A stretch of 39,746 nt of DNA from Ministeria vibrans ATCC 50519. Its lineage: Eukaryota; Protista; Filasterea. The stretch lies in NCBI GenBank assembly GCA_943704425.1, contig CALSCP010001907.1, forward strand, positions 1 to 39,746. The letters run 5' to 3'. The translations under genes and the position numbers were made by a program. How positions within the stretch are numbered: the first letter of the stretch is position 1; every line of letters begins with the position of its first letter. This document shows, piece by piece, positions 9,777-16,778 of this stretch. The notes under the pieces were generated by a model. That model worked only from the letters and a program-made list of their open reading frames with translations, made no database searches and was not told where the DNA came from.

Positions 9777-9914
9777 GTATTTTGGAAATGTATCCGACTT
9801 CTTCTTCAAATGAATTATCCATCGTAATTCTTTTGTTACACCGAATACAACAACTCTTTGAATGTTTCGCACATGCTAGACAGAGCGCATGTATTTCGTG
9901 AGTGCTCTTCGAAC

Positions 9915-12900
9915 TTAGATCGCCCCATCGTCGTCCTCTTTCGCAGGCACCACGAGAGCACACTCGACAATGCGGCTAGTCGACGTGCCCACAAAGACAC
10001 GCGTATATGTGCCGGGCATAACATGAACGCTCGCCACACTACACCTGAAGTCGATGCGCTTCGAGTCATAAAAGTTGCTGGTGCTGAGCACGCTGCAGCC
10101 ACCGTCGTGCCCAAACACAAACGCCCCATCACCCACTGCTGATGACCGCACGTAAGTGTATGAGAGGACCGCCACCTCCCGCATTGTCCATGAGTTCATG
10201 TCGATCAGTAAAACACACGAATGATAGTCCAAAGGGCAATAATCGTCCTGCCTGCGTTCCACAGCGAGCACGTTCCCCGAGCCACAATCATGAAGCAGCA
10301 GGTCCACTTGACAGAAGTGCGCAAGTGCGTCGCAACAATCACCCGTCTGTACATCCCACACGCTGTACTGCGCGCGCATGCGAATGCGAGACTTGGACGA
10401 TTTGTTCACATCCGACACAACCAAAAGACGGCCAGCCTCAAGGTCAAGAAGGTCGCGCACACGTCCGTCGTGCTCTACAGTTCGCACATGCTCAAATGCA
10501 TCCTCGCGACACGCGATGATATGCACGAGTCGTTCACACGCCACGGCAATTTGCAGTCCGTCCAACAGCTTGGCCCGCGAGACTACCTGATTGAGAGCGT
10601 ACTCTGCAAGGCGATTGATTGCCATGCCGTACAGCTTAAGAGTGCCATCACTTGCAACCGTGACAAAGTGCTGCAAGGGCGCTGGCAACACAACAAGTTC
10701 GAGTAGCTCGCCGTGGAAAGACGTCTCTCTCTTCACCAGTTGCAGCGTGTCCGCGTCGAGCAAACACAGCGCAAAGTGAGCGTCTTGCGCTACTAGGAAT
10801 GTATTTTCGTCGTCGACCGCAATGAACCCCAGCACATTCATGTACAAAGTATCCTCGTCGGTACTCACACGGAGCAGCGTGTCCGTGTCGCAGACACAAT
10901 GGGCATTGTCGCGTACACAAAAGGTTTCCCAGGTATCAGACCACATTGCTATCATCACCGTCTTTTCATCTGGTGACATAAGCACATGCCCCACAGGACC
11001 ACTCAACACACGCACAAATGAGAGAATTACCCCCTGATGAACACTCACAAAAGCTACCGCGCCATTGACCAGGCCGCAGAGCGCATGCGCCGAGGTCAAA
11101 GCCACGCTAGATACGGTCCAAGGAAAGGTGACGGAAAAGATTCGCTCGCAACGTACCAGGTTGTATCCATGAAGATGACACCCCTCGGATGCTACAAGAA
11201 ACTCGGCGGCAGCCGCAAAGTATGTACATTTCGCTTCCAGTCCAAGCAGTTCCTCGTCGGCTGTCGCACCAACAAGGCGCAACGAACCGCTCTCTGCATT
11301 GTACACCAAAAAGGTTTCATCACCATGGAAACCAATCACACGCTCACAAACACCAGACGTGGGTACAACTCGCACCTCAGTCGCGGTGTCTCGACCAAGC
11401 CTATAGAGCAACACATTTTTCGTACACGACAGCGCTGCCAACTCGCCATTGGCGCTGATATGCAAAAACTCCAGATTGAAGAACATCTCAGGGACATGGG
11501 CAAGGCACACCGGAACGCTCACGTCAAAATAGACATCACGCGCAAGGTCCACGACAAGGAGACGTTCGCCAATACAAAAGAAGGCGCGTGAACCGTGCAT
11601 CGCAAAGCCACTGCACACTTCCATACCGAATGAATCTTCCGACTGGAAAACATTGGAAATCTTCCGTTCCACCGTGTACGTGCTCGTGTCAACCACAAAA
11701 GGATCATCTCGAGGGGGAAGGCACATCACGCGCTCGTTGTCTATAAATGCCGCGTGTTGAGGTGCATGGATATGCCTCGCAAACTCAACAGAGGTGATCA
11801 TGCGGTCGCGCGCGGCCGAATGCTGCAGCCAGGCACGTTGGGGCAGCAAACCCAAACCTGACTGGCGCAGCACCTCCTGTGCACCCTCAAGAAGGCGAAT
11901 GACATGGCCATGAGGCAGCGGAGATATTCGAGAGAGCAGCTGAAATGCAAGTACGGATGCCCCTTGGATCTTGCTATCTCTGGTAGCAGACACCCTTGAA
12001 AAACCCCCATTGTTGCCCATTGCGAAATCACGCACGGCCGCACGTAACTTCGCGACGCCTGGGTCGCCAAGTCGCTCGACAAGCGCTTCGCTCAGAGTCG
12101 TAAAAAGCATGTCACGGTAGCCCACAAGTGCACACGCGTGCAGTAGCCAGTTGAAATCAAAAATCAAGTCTTTGGCAAGCAGCAGTAAGCTTTTTGCGCC
12201 GATCATGTGCCGCGACACGACGTGTCGATAAAAGTAGAGTGCCAAGGAATCGAACAGTAAGGGTGTCAAGAAATTGCCGCCGGAATCGCACACCAACTTG
12301 GGCGCTTGCGGCCAAGAGATGCCGCACCACTTACGGAGCGCGTTAAACGTATCTTCGTGGTGCTGTTCAATTGCGTCGCAACCGTTAAAGTGCGCAAAAT
12401 CGGCCTGCAGCTCGTGCAGCGTGTAATATTTGTCGCTGTTAGACGTGAGCATTGACAGATCGACAAGAAGACCCGCAATGTGCGACGTGTCAAATACACA
12501 CAGCGTAATCTCGTGCTTTGTCGTGTGCGCCTCCCAGAGCACATGGAGCAGCTCGCATGGGATACGCTCGCCTTTTGGAAACACACACAGCTGGGCGTAG
12601 CAGTTGCGCACACACTCGTACAACTCGCGCTCGTCTGCGAGCGCCTCAAATGACACATCCAGCGCCGCACTGATCTGCACTAGAGAGTTGTCATGACGAT
12701 AGTGCTGTTCTTTGTACTTAAAGGCGTGGACCCATCGGGAACCAGCCTCGCGTAAACTGGCGACACGCGTGCCCCAATCCCGGCGCTTCGATACTGAGGC
12801 ACCCAGCATGGCAAGGGCCAGTGGCAAGTAGCCGCAGAGCTGCGCGAGTTCGATGGCGGCCTCCTCATCAGCCGATGCCATGGCCCCCTCCTCGTGCTTC

Positions 12901-14288
12901 GCACACTTGCGTAGCAGAGCCACAGCGTCGGGCAGCGCCAGCGACTCGACGCGCTCGACGACGGCGTCATCAGGCACCATTTGAGACTGTCGCGTGGTCA
13001 TGACAAACTGCACGCGAGAATGATTGTCAAAGCAGCGCATAAGGGGTGTCAGATGTTCCGCGTGCCACACGTTCTCCGCGACGACAAGTAGTCGCGCGCC
13101 GTTCTGAGTGACGGTTGTCGCCGCCTGGAGGTTGATCCAGTCGACGAGCCAGTCGACATTGTCTACAGGCGCATCACTGCCCCATTGTTTTTTACTTTCC
13201 CGGTCAAGTAGCAGCGCCAGGCGATATAAGATGCGCGCCATGTTGACGGATGCCTGATCGACGCCAAGCTGCACCCAGATTACACGGACAAAGGCACTGC
13301 GCACGCGCGCATCCTGCGCCACGGCCGTCGCGAGTACCGTCTTGCCTACTCCCCCCATCCCCACAAGCGCAGTTACACGCGGAGCGTTCTCGGCCGCAAC
13401 AGTGTCGATCAGCTTGGAAACTTGGTCGGTTATCATGTGGTGTGGCGGAAGCGAGGGCACCTCAAAATCGGTGATGATGACGGTAGCAGGCGCGCGTTCT
13501 TTGCGTTCTTCCAACTTTTCCACGCGCGCTGTGAGGGCTTCGACCTCGGCCTGCATCTCAGCCATCTGCTTCATTACGGCCTTCGCCTCGTCCTCGGCTG
13601 CCGTGACGACCGCCTGTGTGAGCCTATCTGTCGGTAGCGTCTCCAGGAACGAGCCAATCTTTGTGGCGACGGTGGCGCCCGCTGGAATTTCCTCGAGAAG
13701 CGCCTCCAGCGCGCGTATTCCCTCGGCAAACTTTGGTGGTGCAAGTTTCTGGTCGCTCGCGTGCGCCCATGTGTTGCGTGCTTTGCGGACGCGCTCAATG
13801 AGATTCGGTGGCAGTCGCGACCCCTTGTAGTATTGAAGGAAGGCACACAGACACGTCGCGTCGCTTTGAAAGGCGCTGTGGCACGATGGGGCGACCGGCA
13901 CCTTGACAAACACCTTGGCAAGCTCCCAGGGCGCGTGCGAGGGGTCGCACCACGCATTGAGATTGCTATTGCCAAAGTTGAGTTGCGCGACGTCCGTACG
14001 TCTGTGCAGCGAAATGCACATTTTCTCCCATCTAGCAAGGTGCTTACAGCGCGGATCCACCTCGCTCGGCCGCTTGCCAGCCTTGAGGTTGAGCTGCTTC
14101 AGGTGATAGCAGGGCTCATCGTCGCATGTCCTCGGCACAGGGGGCAGAGTGGCGAAGTGCTCTTGAAACATCTTTGTTGCCGTGTCATCGGCACAGCGAC
14201 GGATCACATCGAGAGAAACCTGGAGAGCATGAGCGAACGAGAGCCAGCGGGCAAAGTCTTGATCCTCGAGGCGGTCTGATAACTCCAT
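9915..14288 (-). CDS. APAF1-like STAND NTPase: N-terminal DUF4559/CXorf38-like HEPN domain, coiled coil, NB-ARC, helical domain and degenerate WD40-like beta-propellers; single exon, 1457 aa
   Basis: Uninterrupted ORF with ATG at 14288. Walker A GMGGVGKT (13361-13338), Walker B LLVVAENVW, FVMTTR, CGYLPLAL, YTLHELQADF (APAF1 has YLHDLQVDF) and IFDFNWL. The N-terminus RLEDQDFARW..HAL..NFGNSN...W....PWELAKVF..DATCL..VRKARNTWAH resembles CXorf38 and carries the HEPN R-x4-H motif. Confidence 0.9.
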   Translation of the reverse strand: MELSDRLEDQDFARWLSFAHALQVSLDVIRRCADDTATKMFQEHFATLPPVPRTCDDEPCYHLKQLNLKAGKRPSEVDPRCKHLARWEKMCISLHRRTDVAQLNFGNSNLNAWCDPSHAPWELAKVFVKVPVAPSCHSAFQSDATCLCAFLQYYKGSRLPPNLIERVRKARNTWAHASDQKLAPPKFAEGIRALEALLEEIPAGATVATKIGSFLETLPTDRLTQAVVTAAEDEAKAVMKQMAEMQAEVEALTARVEKLEERKERAPATVIITDFEVPSLPPHHMITDQVSKLIDTVAAENAPRVTALVGMGGVGKTVLATAVAQDARVRSAFVRVIWVQLGVDQASVNMARILYRLALLLDRESKKQWGSDAPVDNVDWLVDWINLQAATTVTQNGARLLVVAENVWHAEHLTPLMRCFDNHSRVQFVMTTRQSQMVPDDAVVERVESLALPDAVALLRKCAKHEEGAMASADEEAAIELAQLCGYLPLALAMLGASVSKRRDWGTRVASLREAGSRWVHAFKYKEQHYRHDNSLVQISAALDVSFEALADERELYECVRNCYAQLCVFPKGERIPCELLHVLWEAHTTKHEITLCVFDTSHIAGLLVDLSMLTSNSDKYYTLHELQADFAHFNGCDAIEQHHEDTFNALRKWCGISWPQAPKLVCDSGGNFLTPLLFDSLALYFYRHVVSRHMIGAKSLLLLAKDLIFDFNWLLHACALVGYRDMLFTTLSEALVERLGDPGVAKLRAAVRDFAMGNNGGFSRVSATRDSKIQGASVLAFQLLSRISPLPHGHVIRLLEGAQEVLRQSGLGLLPQRAWLQHSAARDRMITSVEFARHIHAPQHAAFIDNERVMCLPPRDDPFVVDTSTYTVERKISNVFQSEDSFGMEVCSGFAMHGSRAFFCIGERLLVVDLARDVYFDVSVPVCLAHVPEMFFNLEFLHISANGELAALSCTKNVLLYRLGRDTATEVRVVPTSGVCERVIGFHGDETFLVYNAESGSLRLVGATADEELLGLEAKCTYFAAAAEFLVASEGCHLHGYNLVRCERIFSVTFPWTVSSVALTSAHALCGLVNGAVAFVSVHQGVILSFVRVLSGPVGHVLMSPDEKTVMIAMWSDTWETFCVRDNAHCVCDTDTLLRVSTDEDTLYMNVLGFIAVDDENTFLVAQDAHFALCLLDADTLQLVKRETSFHGELLELVVLPAPLQHFVTVASDGTLKLYGMAINRLAEYALNQVVSRAKLLDGLQIAVACERLVHIIACREDAFEHVRTVEHDGRVRDLLDLEAGRLLVVSDVNKSSKSRIRMRAQYSVWDVQTGDCCDALAHFCQVDLLLHDCGSGNVLAVERRQDDYCPLDYHSCVLLIDMNSWTMREVAVLSYTYVRSSAVGDGAFVFGHDGGCSVLSTSNFYDSKRIDFRCSVASVHVMPGTYTRVFVGTSTSRIVECALVVPAKEDDDGAI

Positions 14289-14360
14289 TGATTTTTTTTT
14301 TACGATGAAAAAGATAAGAATGATCAAGTAAGATCAATTTTTTGTCGCCTTTTCGTAACC

Positions 14361-16778
14361 ATGTCAAAACTTACCACATCAAACGGATCACCTGTGATGG
14401 ACAACCGCAACTCGCTCACGGTTGGACCCAACGGCCCTGTGTACGCATTGCGCCCTCAACACCCGCACATTTCTTATTGTTTTCCGTCTTGTTTTTCCAG
14501 AGTGCTTCAGGATTTCCATCTCATCGACAAACTTGCCCACTTTGACCGCGAGCGTATCCCCGAGCGTGTGGTCCATGCCAAGGGCGCGGGAGCTCACGGC
14601 TACTTCGAGGTGACTCACGACGTGACTCACTGTAAGTGCGAATGAATGAAAACTGAGTGCGCTCTAACAACTCTCTCTCTCTTTCTCTCTCTCTCTTTCT
14701 CTCTCTCTCTCTGCATCTTCCTTAGTGTGCAAGGCCGACTTTCTGTCGCGTATTGGCAAACGAACACCCGTGCTGACGCGATTCAGCACTGTTGGCGGCG
14801 AGAAGGTGCGAGAAGGACGGACTTTGTGTTTCTCTGATCCTGTGCGTTGTTTTGTTTTGTAGGGCTCTGCCGACACCGCTCGCGATCCTCGCGGGTTTGC
14901 CGTCAAGTTCTACACTGCTGAGGGCAACTGGGATATGGTGGGCAACAACACGCCGGTGTTTTTCATTCGCGATCCGTCGCAGTTTCCGGATTTCATTCAC
15001 ACGCAGAAGCGCAATCCGCAAACCAACTGCCCCGACCCCAACATGTTTTGGGACTTTCTCTCGCTCACACCCGAGTCTGTCCACCAAGTGACCGTGCTGT
15101 TTTCGCCGCGCGGCACTCCCGATGGCTACCGCCACATGAATGGGTACGGCTACAAACGTCAATCTCTCGCCCTTCCCCTAATGCACCCTCTCGCAGCTAC
15201 GGATCGCACACCTTCAAGGTGGTCAACAAGGGAGGCGACGCTCACTGGGTCAAGTTTCACTTCAAGGTACCTCTTTGTATCTTCTATTTTGACATGTACT
15301 AATAATGTGGTTGTCTCTTTGACAGACGGACCAAGGAGTGAAGAACCTGACTCCGGCTGAGGCGGGTCGTCTTGCGGGAGAGAATCCCGACTACGCGACA
15401 AGCGACCTGTTCAAGGCAATTGATGGAGGCGACTTTCCTTCATGGTCACTCAAGATTCAGGTGATGACGGAGCAGGAGGCGCTGCACTACCGCATCAACC
15501 CCTTTGACGTGACCAAGGTGTGGCCGCACAAGGACTTTCCCCTGCACCCCGTCGGCCGCATGGTCCTCAACCGCAACCCCGACAACTACTTTGCCGAGGT
15601 CGAGCAGGCCGCCTTCTCTCCGTCCCACATGGTCCCCGGTAGCCCATCGAGAGCGATTGAGTTGCCCGATTCCTGACTCTCTTTTTGTCTCTCGATGTAT
15701 TTGTGTTTTGTCTCGTTGTTGTTAGGCATTGAGCCGTCGCCCGACAAGATGCTGCAAGGGCGCCTCTTTTCATACCCCGACACCCACCGCCATCGTCTGG
15801 GCGCTAACTACACGCAGGTAAGGAGATGTAGCAAGAGCGTGTGCACTGCATTTGAGCGAGTAAGTGACACCACACCGTCTACCCCTTCCTTTTTTTCTCT
15901 GTGTTTTAGATTCCCGTTAACTGCCCTTACGCTGCGCGCGCTCGCTCTCACCAGCGCGATGGGCTCATGGCTGTCGATGGCAACGGCGGATCTGCCCCAA
16001 ACTACTACCCCAACACCAGCACGGGCTCTATCACAGTCTCTCCGGGTGCCACCGACACTTCCCCCTTCCACGCCGAGGTACAATGTACATACACACACAC
16101 TCTCTCTCTCTATCACTTTGTTTCTTTCTCCCTTCTCTCTCTCTATCACTTTTTTCTTTCTCCCTTCTTTCTCTCTATCACTTTGTTTCTTTCTCCCTTC
16201 TTTCTCTCTATCACTTTGTTTCTTTCTCCCTTCTTTCTCTCTATCACTTTGTTTCTTTCTCCCTTCTCTCTCTCTATCACTTTGTTTCTCCTCTCTCTCT
16301 CTCTATCTCTCTCTCTATCACTTTATTTCTTTCTCCCTCCTTTCTCTCTCTCTCTCTCTATCACTTTATTTCTTTCTCCCTCCTTTCTCTCTCTCTCTCT
16401 CTATCACTTTATTTCTTTCTCTCTCTCTCTCTAGACACGTGACATCGCACTCACACTCACTTTCTTTAGGGCACCGTGGCGCACCATGTTCCGAGTGGGC
16501 CCCTTGTCGATGACTATGCTCAGGCAGGTGCGCTCTTCCGTCTCATGGCGGGTCCTGCCCAGGATGAGCTGGTCATGAACATTGCTGGTCATCTCGGAAA
16601 GGCACGCACGGACATCCAGAAACGCCAAATCGAGGTAAAACACATTCGTGTCACTCACTAGTCACTGACGCTCAATCTCATTGTCGTTCGCTGACTGGCC
16701 CTTCCTTAGATCTTCCGTAAGGCTGATCCTGACTACGGTCGTCGCATTGAGGCGCTTCTCTTTGGCGCAAAGCTCTAA
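14361..16778 (+). CDS. CAT: Monofunctional heme catalase, peroxisomal (PTS1 -AKL)
   Basis: [37 protein letters not shown]|[22 protein letters not shown]. The last exon reads [22 protein letters not shown]. About 10 exons. Confidence 0.97.
16100..16432 (+). repeat. Intronic minisatellite array of (CT)n-ATCACTTTGTTTC units in a catalase intron
   Basis: About 9 tandem units. The same unit recurs at about 5401, 16995, 20520-20890, 27180-27340, 33380-33430, 35475-35670, 35890-35930 and 38540-38665. Confidence 0.9.

Follow-up and report, generated by a model that had tools for sequence, protein, structure and literature searches.

The window analyzed here, a stretch of 39,746 nucleotides from Ministeria vibrans ATCC 50519 (contig CALSCP010001907.1), carries on its minus strand an expressed, intronless gene whose product joins an N-terminal HEPN domain of the CXorf38/DUF4559 type to an Apaf-1-like NB-ARC core and a long C-terminal region. 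Architecture and expression of this HEPN-STAND gene are secure. On balance, homology together with one dimer model favors a tripartite STAND receptor, in which the HEPN domain would act as a ribonuclease (RNase) activated by oligomerization. A sequence-only reading of the same DNA had proposed a 1457-residue open reading frame (ORF) with an RNTWAH motif at 13778-13761 in a CXorf38-like HEPN context, followed by a coiled coil, an Apaf-1-like NB-ARC, and about 630 residues of divergent propeller repeats. Frame and motif lie exactly where it had placed them, the latter at residues 171-176, and Pfam, phmmer, and ORF results demonstrate that the domains were correctly read from the raw sequence. 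The gene itself is delimited as follows:

9807-14298, minus strand: unspliced transcript, from RNA-derived contigs with 5′ ends at 14298 or 14280 and poly(A) at about 9807
9915-14288, minus strand: coding sequence, a single exon of 1457 codons plus TAA, with the ATG at 14288 and the stop at 9915-9917

The N-terminal part of the protein comprises the HEPN domain and a charged linker:

13614-14288, minus strand: CXorf38/DUF4559-type HEPN domain, residues 1-225, all-helical (Pfam PF15112 and AlphaFold2 model)
13761-13778, minus strand: R-x4-H motif RNTWAH, residues 171-176 (R171, N172, H176), predicted from its conservation to be catalytic
13860-13862, minus strand: D143, acidic and invariant (alignment A1), 28 positions N-terminal to the motif arginine
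14040-14126, minus strand: Cys/His-rich insert with C55, C60, H62, C81, and H83 (sequence, and alignment with the animal C-x-C...C pattern)
13488-13595, minus strand: charged heptad-like linker, residues 232-267, a probable coiled coil (sequence; weak Pfam coiled-coil-type matches)

By homology, the N-terminal domain genuinely belongs to the CXorf38/DUF4559 family. In the full protein, Pfam matches DUF4559 (PF15112) at residues 6-248 with an E value of 1.7e-11 (44.6 bits against a cut-off of 27), and the HEPN domain alone reaches 46.1 bits against the same cut-off. An exhaustive HMMER scan of residues 1-225 against 1.84 billion cluster representatives (E ≤ 1e-3) returned just 10 homologs. The two named ones are both animal: a protein of 6510 residues from the fluke Dicrocoelium, matched in 14 stretches, and protein P0003 of the coral Montipora, in which a CXorf38-type HEPN domain is followed by a P-loop module. 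The remaining homologs, 234-380 residues long, show the CXorf38 signature and end in a hydrophobic tail. Full-length relatives with this HEPN domain were not found in a word-indexed search with residues 1-260 among proteins of 800-2550 residues, a result that carries little weight given the limits of the method.

Alignment A1, composed of the window protein, five paralogs, and eight animal-type homologs (14 rows), reveals D143, R171, N172, and H176 as invariant and R30, W113, W121, A124, and W174 as nearly invariant. DUF4559 is matched by 13 of the 14 members (best E 3.3e-33) and HEPN_Swt1 (PF18731) by nine (best E 5e-6), the latter providing an independent sequence link between the CXorf38/DUF4559 family and the HEPN superfamily. 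RNTWAH corresponds to 162-RNEIMH in human CXorf38, and the spacing of 28 residues between D143 and R171 equals that between human D134 and R162. A computational preprint of 2026 predicts R162-NEIM-H167 and D134 as the catalytic residues of the human protein. Hence, the CXorf38-like context claimed by the sequence-only reading is borne out, the motif is conserved among paralogs and animal homologs, and a coiled-coil-like stretch is visible where it had expected one. To judge from the sequence, the Cys/His cluster is possibly the Zn-ribbon insert described for CXorf38; most paralogs lack its cysteines, and in the AlphaFold2 model the predicted local distance difference test score (pLDDT) of the insert is 63-65.

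The best full-length homolog of the HEPN domain, P0002 (380 residues, with a hydrophobic tail), is encoded at 587-1729 of Logan contig L022. It lies 600 bp upstream of a 1637-residue NPHP3_N-WHD_TANC1-ankyrin STAND gene (L022, 2333 onward), and the two neighbors are either parts of a single gene model that was split or a HEPN/STAND pair of two genes.

AlphaFold2 predicts an all-helical HEPN domain (pLDDT 86.8, predicted template modeling score 0.85) with RNTWAH at the end of helix 161-175, ahead of helix 184-199. As a homodimer, the domain scores an ipSAE of 0.63 compared to 0.01 for the best control (pLDDT 81-83), a mark attained in calibration by 21 of the 30 proteins that were solved as pairs and none of the 23 solved as single chains, and the contacts agree to 100% between runs. 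The predicted interface is symmetric and formed by residues 142-144, 175-176, and 178-180. Within it, D143 contacts H176 of the opposite chain, the geometry that would be expected of a composite HEPN site. The modeling of oligomers suggested along with the sequence-only reading yields a predicted symmetric dimer with both residues at its interface.

The central part of the protein is an Apaf-1-like STAND core:

12783-13430, minus strand: NB-ARC domain, residues 287-502 (Pfam PF00931)
13338-13361, minus strand: P-loop GMGGVGKT (Apaf-1 alignment)
13065-13091, minus strand: Walker B LLVVAENVW (motif table)
12987-13001, minus strand: sensor I TTR within MTTRQ (Apaf-1 alignment)
12801-12833, minus strand: GLPL-like LPLAL within GYLPLALAMLG (Apaf-1 alignment)
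12396-12608, minus strand: winged-helix domain (WHD), residues 561-631 (below-threshold Pfam matches and Apaf-1 alignment)
12396-12422, minus strand: LHE sensor motif TLHELQADF at the end of the WHD (YLHDLQVDF in Apaf-1)
11889-12395, minus strand: helical region, residues 632-800, at the position of Apaf-1 HD2 and assigned by position only

The NB-ARC match is strong (E 1.1e-23, 84.2 bits against a cut-off of 23.5), while APAF-1-like_WHD and Dark_WHD both stay below the Pfam threshold at residues 561-631, the former with 18.3 bits. A phmmer search of all PDB sequences matched plant NRC helper NLRs and Apaf-1, aligning residues 301-653 to Apaf-1 145-466 with a score of about 43 bits for the NB-ARC/WHD region, and the core was aligned with 1z6t and NRC3. 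The Apaf-1-like NB-ARC is thus confirmed down to the LHE/LHD sensor motif. Pfam matches APAF1_C in paralogs L013, L014, and L021, not in the window copy. Further, no CARD or Death domain is matched in the window protein at E ≤ 1 and no leucine-rich repeat is matched by Pfam; the core is of the NB-ARC and not of the NACHT type.

Relatives of the core were sought with residues 280-700 in a word-indexed search of 5.8 billion proteins, which listed 124 matches. Among the top 120, NB-ARC-WD40 proteins of bacterial or metagenomic origin prevail, the best of them from Chloroflexota, cyanobacteria, planctomycetes, and metagenomes with up to 91 bits at 25-31% identity, roughly twice the bits of Apaf-1 (window 12189-13451, minus strand). 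Many of the listed matches carry TIR (PF13676) or SIR2 (PF13289) N-termini; PF15112 occurs in none of the 124, and a single plant is the only eukaryote among them. These bacterial-leaning scores may reflect either horizontal transfer or database sampling.

The third part is the presumed sensor:

9918-11888, minus strand: C-terminal 657 residues (801-1457), probably one or more degenerate WD40-like propellers (weak concordant matches)

Three Pfam families match residues 801-1457 at E ≤ 10, all of them beta-propellers and all far below threshold: Beta-prop_EML_2 (E 0.0033), Beta-prop_WDR3_2nd (E 0.0094 over 264 residues), and ANAPC4_WD40 (E 0.1). Moreover, language-model features of the C-terminus point to WD40 clusters (0.92), and paralog L015 has strong WD40 matches at the equivalent position. 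Comparison of the window C-terminus with the WD40 regions of paralogs by BLASTP and hhalign gave nothing significant, the sole hhalign match pairing the blade-like motif GPVGHVLMSPDEKTV with GPVSLLAMSPDGLTIV at a probability of 1.6%. We regard the C-terminus as a probable degenerate WD40-like sensor. Of the earlier claim of divergent propeller repeats, the propeller character is weakly supported by concordant matches, whereas WD40 repeats are not demonstrated for the window copy.

Expression of the gene is documented by RNA. The longest ORF, 9915-14327 on the minus strand, would yield 1470 residues from a TTG codon; its first ATG, at 14288, gives the 1457-residue protein, and an in-frame stop lies 13 codons 5′ of the ATG of the gene. 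Contigs from sequencing runs X6, X8, and X12, which belong to three studies, skip the four GT..AG introns of the neighboring catalase gene (14440-14501, 14803-14861, 15142-15196, and 15264-15324; 53-60 nt), and these RNA contigs confirm the introns. In contrast, the introns are retained in DNA run X4, which identifies X6, X8, and X12 as RNA. Their contigs tile the HEPN-STAND gene from 9807 to 14298 with zero joints. One X6 contig has a loose end of 26 T before plus-strand position 9807, the complement of a poly(A) tail added to the minus-strand mRNA about 108 nt beyond the stop codon. Consequently, the gene is transcribed, polyadenylated, and intronless. The expression data are assembled contigs, whose depth is not usable to rank expression levels.

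Two further candidates were rejected: a pseudogene or silent ORF is ruled out by the RNA contigs and the poly(A) tail, and bacterial contamination by the spliced eukaryotic genes that flank the gene on both sides of the contig. The HEPN-STAND gene is without introns amid neighbors that carry short ones, and its upstream neighbor is divergently arranged:

14361-15400, plus strand: catalase gene, its ATG 72 bp from that of the HEPN-STAND gene

A (GA)n microsatellite at about 14666-14723 in the catalase region falls within a gap of the X6 and X8 contigs (14631-14726).

The genome encodes T-box (two loci, C1301 and C1244), Runt (C2457 and C1193), and integrin-beta (three loci, C749, C376, and C2390). 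This combination fits unicellular Holozoa and supports the earlier view that the host is probably a unicellular relative of animals. Metagenomes of seawater and of algal cultures contain the same DNA, and the organism is taken to be marine.

HEPN RNases such as RNase L/Ire1 KEN, Csm6/Csx1, and HepT are switched on by sensor-driven dimerization or oligomerization. By analogy, we infer for the window protein a ligand, oligomerization, RNase activity, and a role in defense. In the resting state, the C-terminal region together with the ADP-bound NB-ARC would keep the protein monomeric. Binding of a ligand to the C-terminal region would permit nucleotide exchange and oligomerization, as in Apaf-1, plant NLRs, and bacterial Avs/bNACHT proteins. 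The oligomers would then pair HEPN domains, such that two R-x4-H motifs together with D143 form a composite RNase site, as suggested by RNase L, Csm6, and HepT as well as by the dimer model. Cleavage of RNA would finally lead to cell arrest or death, or to the destruction of foreign RNA.

Several observations speak against an oligomerization-activated HEPN receptor with an immune function. At the level of the fold, Foldseek found no match of the HEPN model in the PDB at E ≤ 0.001; the expected DUF4559 is recognized by Pfam, and the four-helix up-down core of HEPN proteins is a presumed fold here. An exhaustive VIA structure search reached a top Z of 6.5, within noise for helical models. Its top 50 include seven HEPN structures at Z 4.8-5.7, below the meaningful level for helical proteins: AbiF 8vz6 (Z 5.7, 147 residues aligned), Csm6 4rgp, AF_0298 2hsb, HI0074 1jog, AbiA 8oz7, Swt1 4pqz, and Cas13bt3 7vti. 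A profile of alignment A1 retrieved no HEPN protein from the PDB sequences, only coiled-coil noise. The passing dimer prediction may echo the memory of the model for solved HEPN dimers, and its calibration is weaker for eukaryotes. RNase activity of CXorf38-family members is a prediction throughout, including in the computational preprint of 2026. In the core, the acidic pair of Walker B is E-N in the window protein compared to D-D in Apaf-1, a departure from the hhhhDD/DE pattern; the paralogs have D-N in three cases and D-D in two. ATP hydrolysis may thus suffer, in which case the mode of the switch may be another one, and the residues of the family suggest that it may bind ATP yet hydrolyze it poorly. 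In the C-terminal region, the AlphaFold2 model of 661 residues from a three-row alignment is unusable (pLDDT 30.6), and an iterative WD40-repeat hidden Markov model (HMM) built from the paralogs detects zero repeats in the window copy. Finally, nothing in the data links the gene to infection, and an immune role, though plausible, is hypothetical.

The window gene belongs to a larger repertoire. Protein and HMM searches of the assembly (29.7 Mb, 2860 contigs) located the CXorf38-type HEPN domain at 12 loci, all 12 of which keep RN..H and the aspartate, and NB-ARC at no fewer than 29 loci. The HEPN loci are arranged as follows:

HEPN with an NB-ARC core, seven loci: C1907 (the window gene), C879a, C312, C1982, C2424, C2574, and C1329
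HEPN with a NACHT/NPHP3_N-type core, three loci: C716 (L019), C879b (L020, 12000-19500), and C1887 (L016)
HEPN with an AAA_16-TPR protein in another frame, one locus: C1569
HEPN alone, a 256-codon ORF, one locus: C2170 (L017, 4864-5631, minus strand)

The HEPN-NACHT-like ORFs comprise 1450 (C716), 1516 (C879b), and 835 (C1887) codons. One HEPN effector is hence common to two STAND clades within a single genome, and on C879 two HEPN-STAND genes lie about 13 kb apart. In the aligned region, the HEPN-only ORF of C2170 is almost identical to the N-terminal part of the HEPN-NB-ARC gene of C2424, RNTWAH included, and represents either a truncated duplicate or a stand-alone HEPN. Loci L012-L015, L019, and L020 are single open frames of 1300-1516 codons despite intron-rich neighbors; retroposition, transfer, or selection on the gene class are possible causes.

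The closest paralog, C879a (L011, C879:126-3912, minus strand), shares 72% protein identity with the window protein and is split over at least three frames, with breaks at about window-protein residues 96-97 and 954-960; close to the start of the contig it terminates at a stop codon. Either recent pseudogenization or an assembly error would account for this state. Relative to C879a, synonymous divergence (dS) of the window gene is about 0.5 and the overall ratio of nonsynonymous to synonymous divergence (dN/dS) is 0.33, with 0.25 in the NTPase, 0.375 in HEPN, and 0.49 in residues 801-1130. The C-termini of the HEPN-STAND proteins in this genome are too divergent for BLASTP. The shuffling of one effector over several STAND clades, fast-diverging C-termini, and the decay of one copy characterize conflict-type repertoires, short of a proof of immunity.

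This repertoire bears on a second explanation, to which we attach a modest chance. Here, the architecture is the same and the role endogenous: the protein would be a switch for cell death, encystment, or stress, or would act in RNA quality control, in response to an internal cue. Apaf-1, the closest solved eukaryotic relative of the core, indeed senses an endogenous signal, cytochrome c; transcripts of the gene appear in RNA runs of ordinary cultures from three studies; and the gene shares its 72-bp divergent spacer with catalase, a stress gene. Speaking against such a role, the genome has 12 HEPN loci and 29 or more NB-ARC loci, the STAND cores are shuffled, the C-termini are hyper-divergent, and one copy is broken, a pattern more typical of conflict systems; moreover, dN/dS is about twice as high in part of the C-terminal region (0.49) as in the NTPase (0.25).

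Somewhat less probable is a HEPN domain that is not a nuclease here and instead serves as an RNA- or nucleotide-binding sensor or as an adaptor with other signaling partners. In the 12 paralogs, R, N, H, and Asp are strictly kept at 20-30% overall identity, the CXorf38 clade was scored as active (PMC3710099), and the N-terminus is the effector position in STAND proteins, all of which argues for catalysis. Precedents for the opposite exist, since the Swt1 HEPN was judged inactive in the same study (PMC3710099), the sacsin HEPN is reported to bind RNA or nucleotides, and HEPN-NLRs may sense RNA (TIAMMAt, PMC8662601).

Very improbable, finally, is a nonfunctional relic of a recent bacterial transfer or retrocopy that is transcribed from a bidirectional catalase promoter: the lack of introns amid intron-rich neighbors and the bacterial best NB-ARC matches (91 bits versus about 43 bits for Apaf-1) would fit, whereas the 4.4-kb ORF is intact with all motifs retained, those HEPN relatives that bear names are animal and not bacterial, dN/dS is 0.33 against the closest paralog, the mRNA carries a poly(A) tail at a defined 3′ end, and many paralogs are intact.

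The receptor with a HEPN RNase as its output, which we favor, has precedents in the literature. Anantharaman et al (2013; PMC3710099) classified CXorf38 as an active HEPN of the Swt1-like group with a Zn-ribbon insert, listed the family from animals only, and described fusions of its domains to NACHT, ankyrin, CARD, Death, and dsRBD in amphioxus, hemichordates, and cnidarians, for which an RNase-L-like antiviral defense at the level of RNA was proposed. Bacterial HEPN-STAND fusions were also noted there (PMC3710099). HEPN-NLRs were further reported in nine invertebrate taxa (TIAMMAt, PMC8662601) and in coral genomes (PMC10236652). The window gene is therefore not the first hint at a function of CXorf38, a domain that the sequence-only reading called uncharacterized, and a HEPN RNase as the output of STAND receptors is an already published idea for this family rather than a new principle. 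Surveys of choanoflagellates and Capsaspora (PMC6040629, PMC3879445) described STAND NTPases with repeats (NACHT-repeat proteins) and without Death or CARD effectors, and concluded that NLR-type signaling may be an animal invention. No description of HEPN-STAND proteins from unicellular holozoans turned up in the literature searches.

New are the Apaf-1-type NB-ARC as the partner of a CXorf38-type HEPN, the occurrence of this HEPN in a holozoan-like unicellular host, and a repertoire of 12 HEPN-STAND loci in a 30-Mb genome. The window locus and its 11 sister loci reveal a unicellular holozoan-like organism that possesses full effector-switch-sensor proteins with a predicted RNase as the effector, and the origin of the CXorf38-type HEPN is moved to before animals. 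The organism with its small genome is also offered for assaying the RNase hypothesis of human CXorf38 and of the coral and amphioxus HEPN-NLRs. A more speculative and rather unlikely extension would make the HEPN RNase the original output of Apaf-1-like switches in the unicellular ancestors of animals, that is, a caspase-independent “RNA-cutting apoptosome” before CARD and caspase, with CXorf38 and HEPN-NLRs as its remnants.

Compared to animal CXorf38 and invertebrate HEPN-NLRs, the window protein has the same HEPN family and the same N-terminal position of HEPN on a STAND NTPase. The animal fusions involve NACHT, CARD, Death, ankyrin, or dsRBD, whereas an Apaf-1-type NB-ARC with a WHD is found here, and the family was listed from animals only, while the host of the window gene is unicellular and holozoan-like. 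With Apaf-1, Dark, and CED-4, the protein shares NB-ARC, WHD, helical domain, and a long C-terminal region of probable repeats, and its motifs match those of Apaf-1 at the residue level (GMGGVGKT, TTR, LPLAL, and LHELQADF versus LHDLQVDF). In contrast to Apaf-1, HEPN and a coiled coil replace the CARD, and the region at the position of its two WD40 propellers is probably WD40-like. The composite R-x4-6-H site activated by dimerization, as proposed from the model, would be common to RNase L/Ire1 KEN, Csm6/Csx1, and HepT; their sensors are unrelated (ankyrin/2-5A, CARF/cOA, and MNT antitoxin, respectively), and there is no detectable sequence relationship beyond the superfamily. With the bacterial STAND defense proteins (Avs and bNACHT; TIR-, SIR2-, and HEPN-STAND), the window protein shares the effector-switch-sensor layout, whereas its HEPN domain belongs to the eukaryotic CXorf38 clade. 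It thereby adds a further case for a modular logic common to eukaryotic and bacterial STAND defense proteins.

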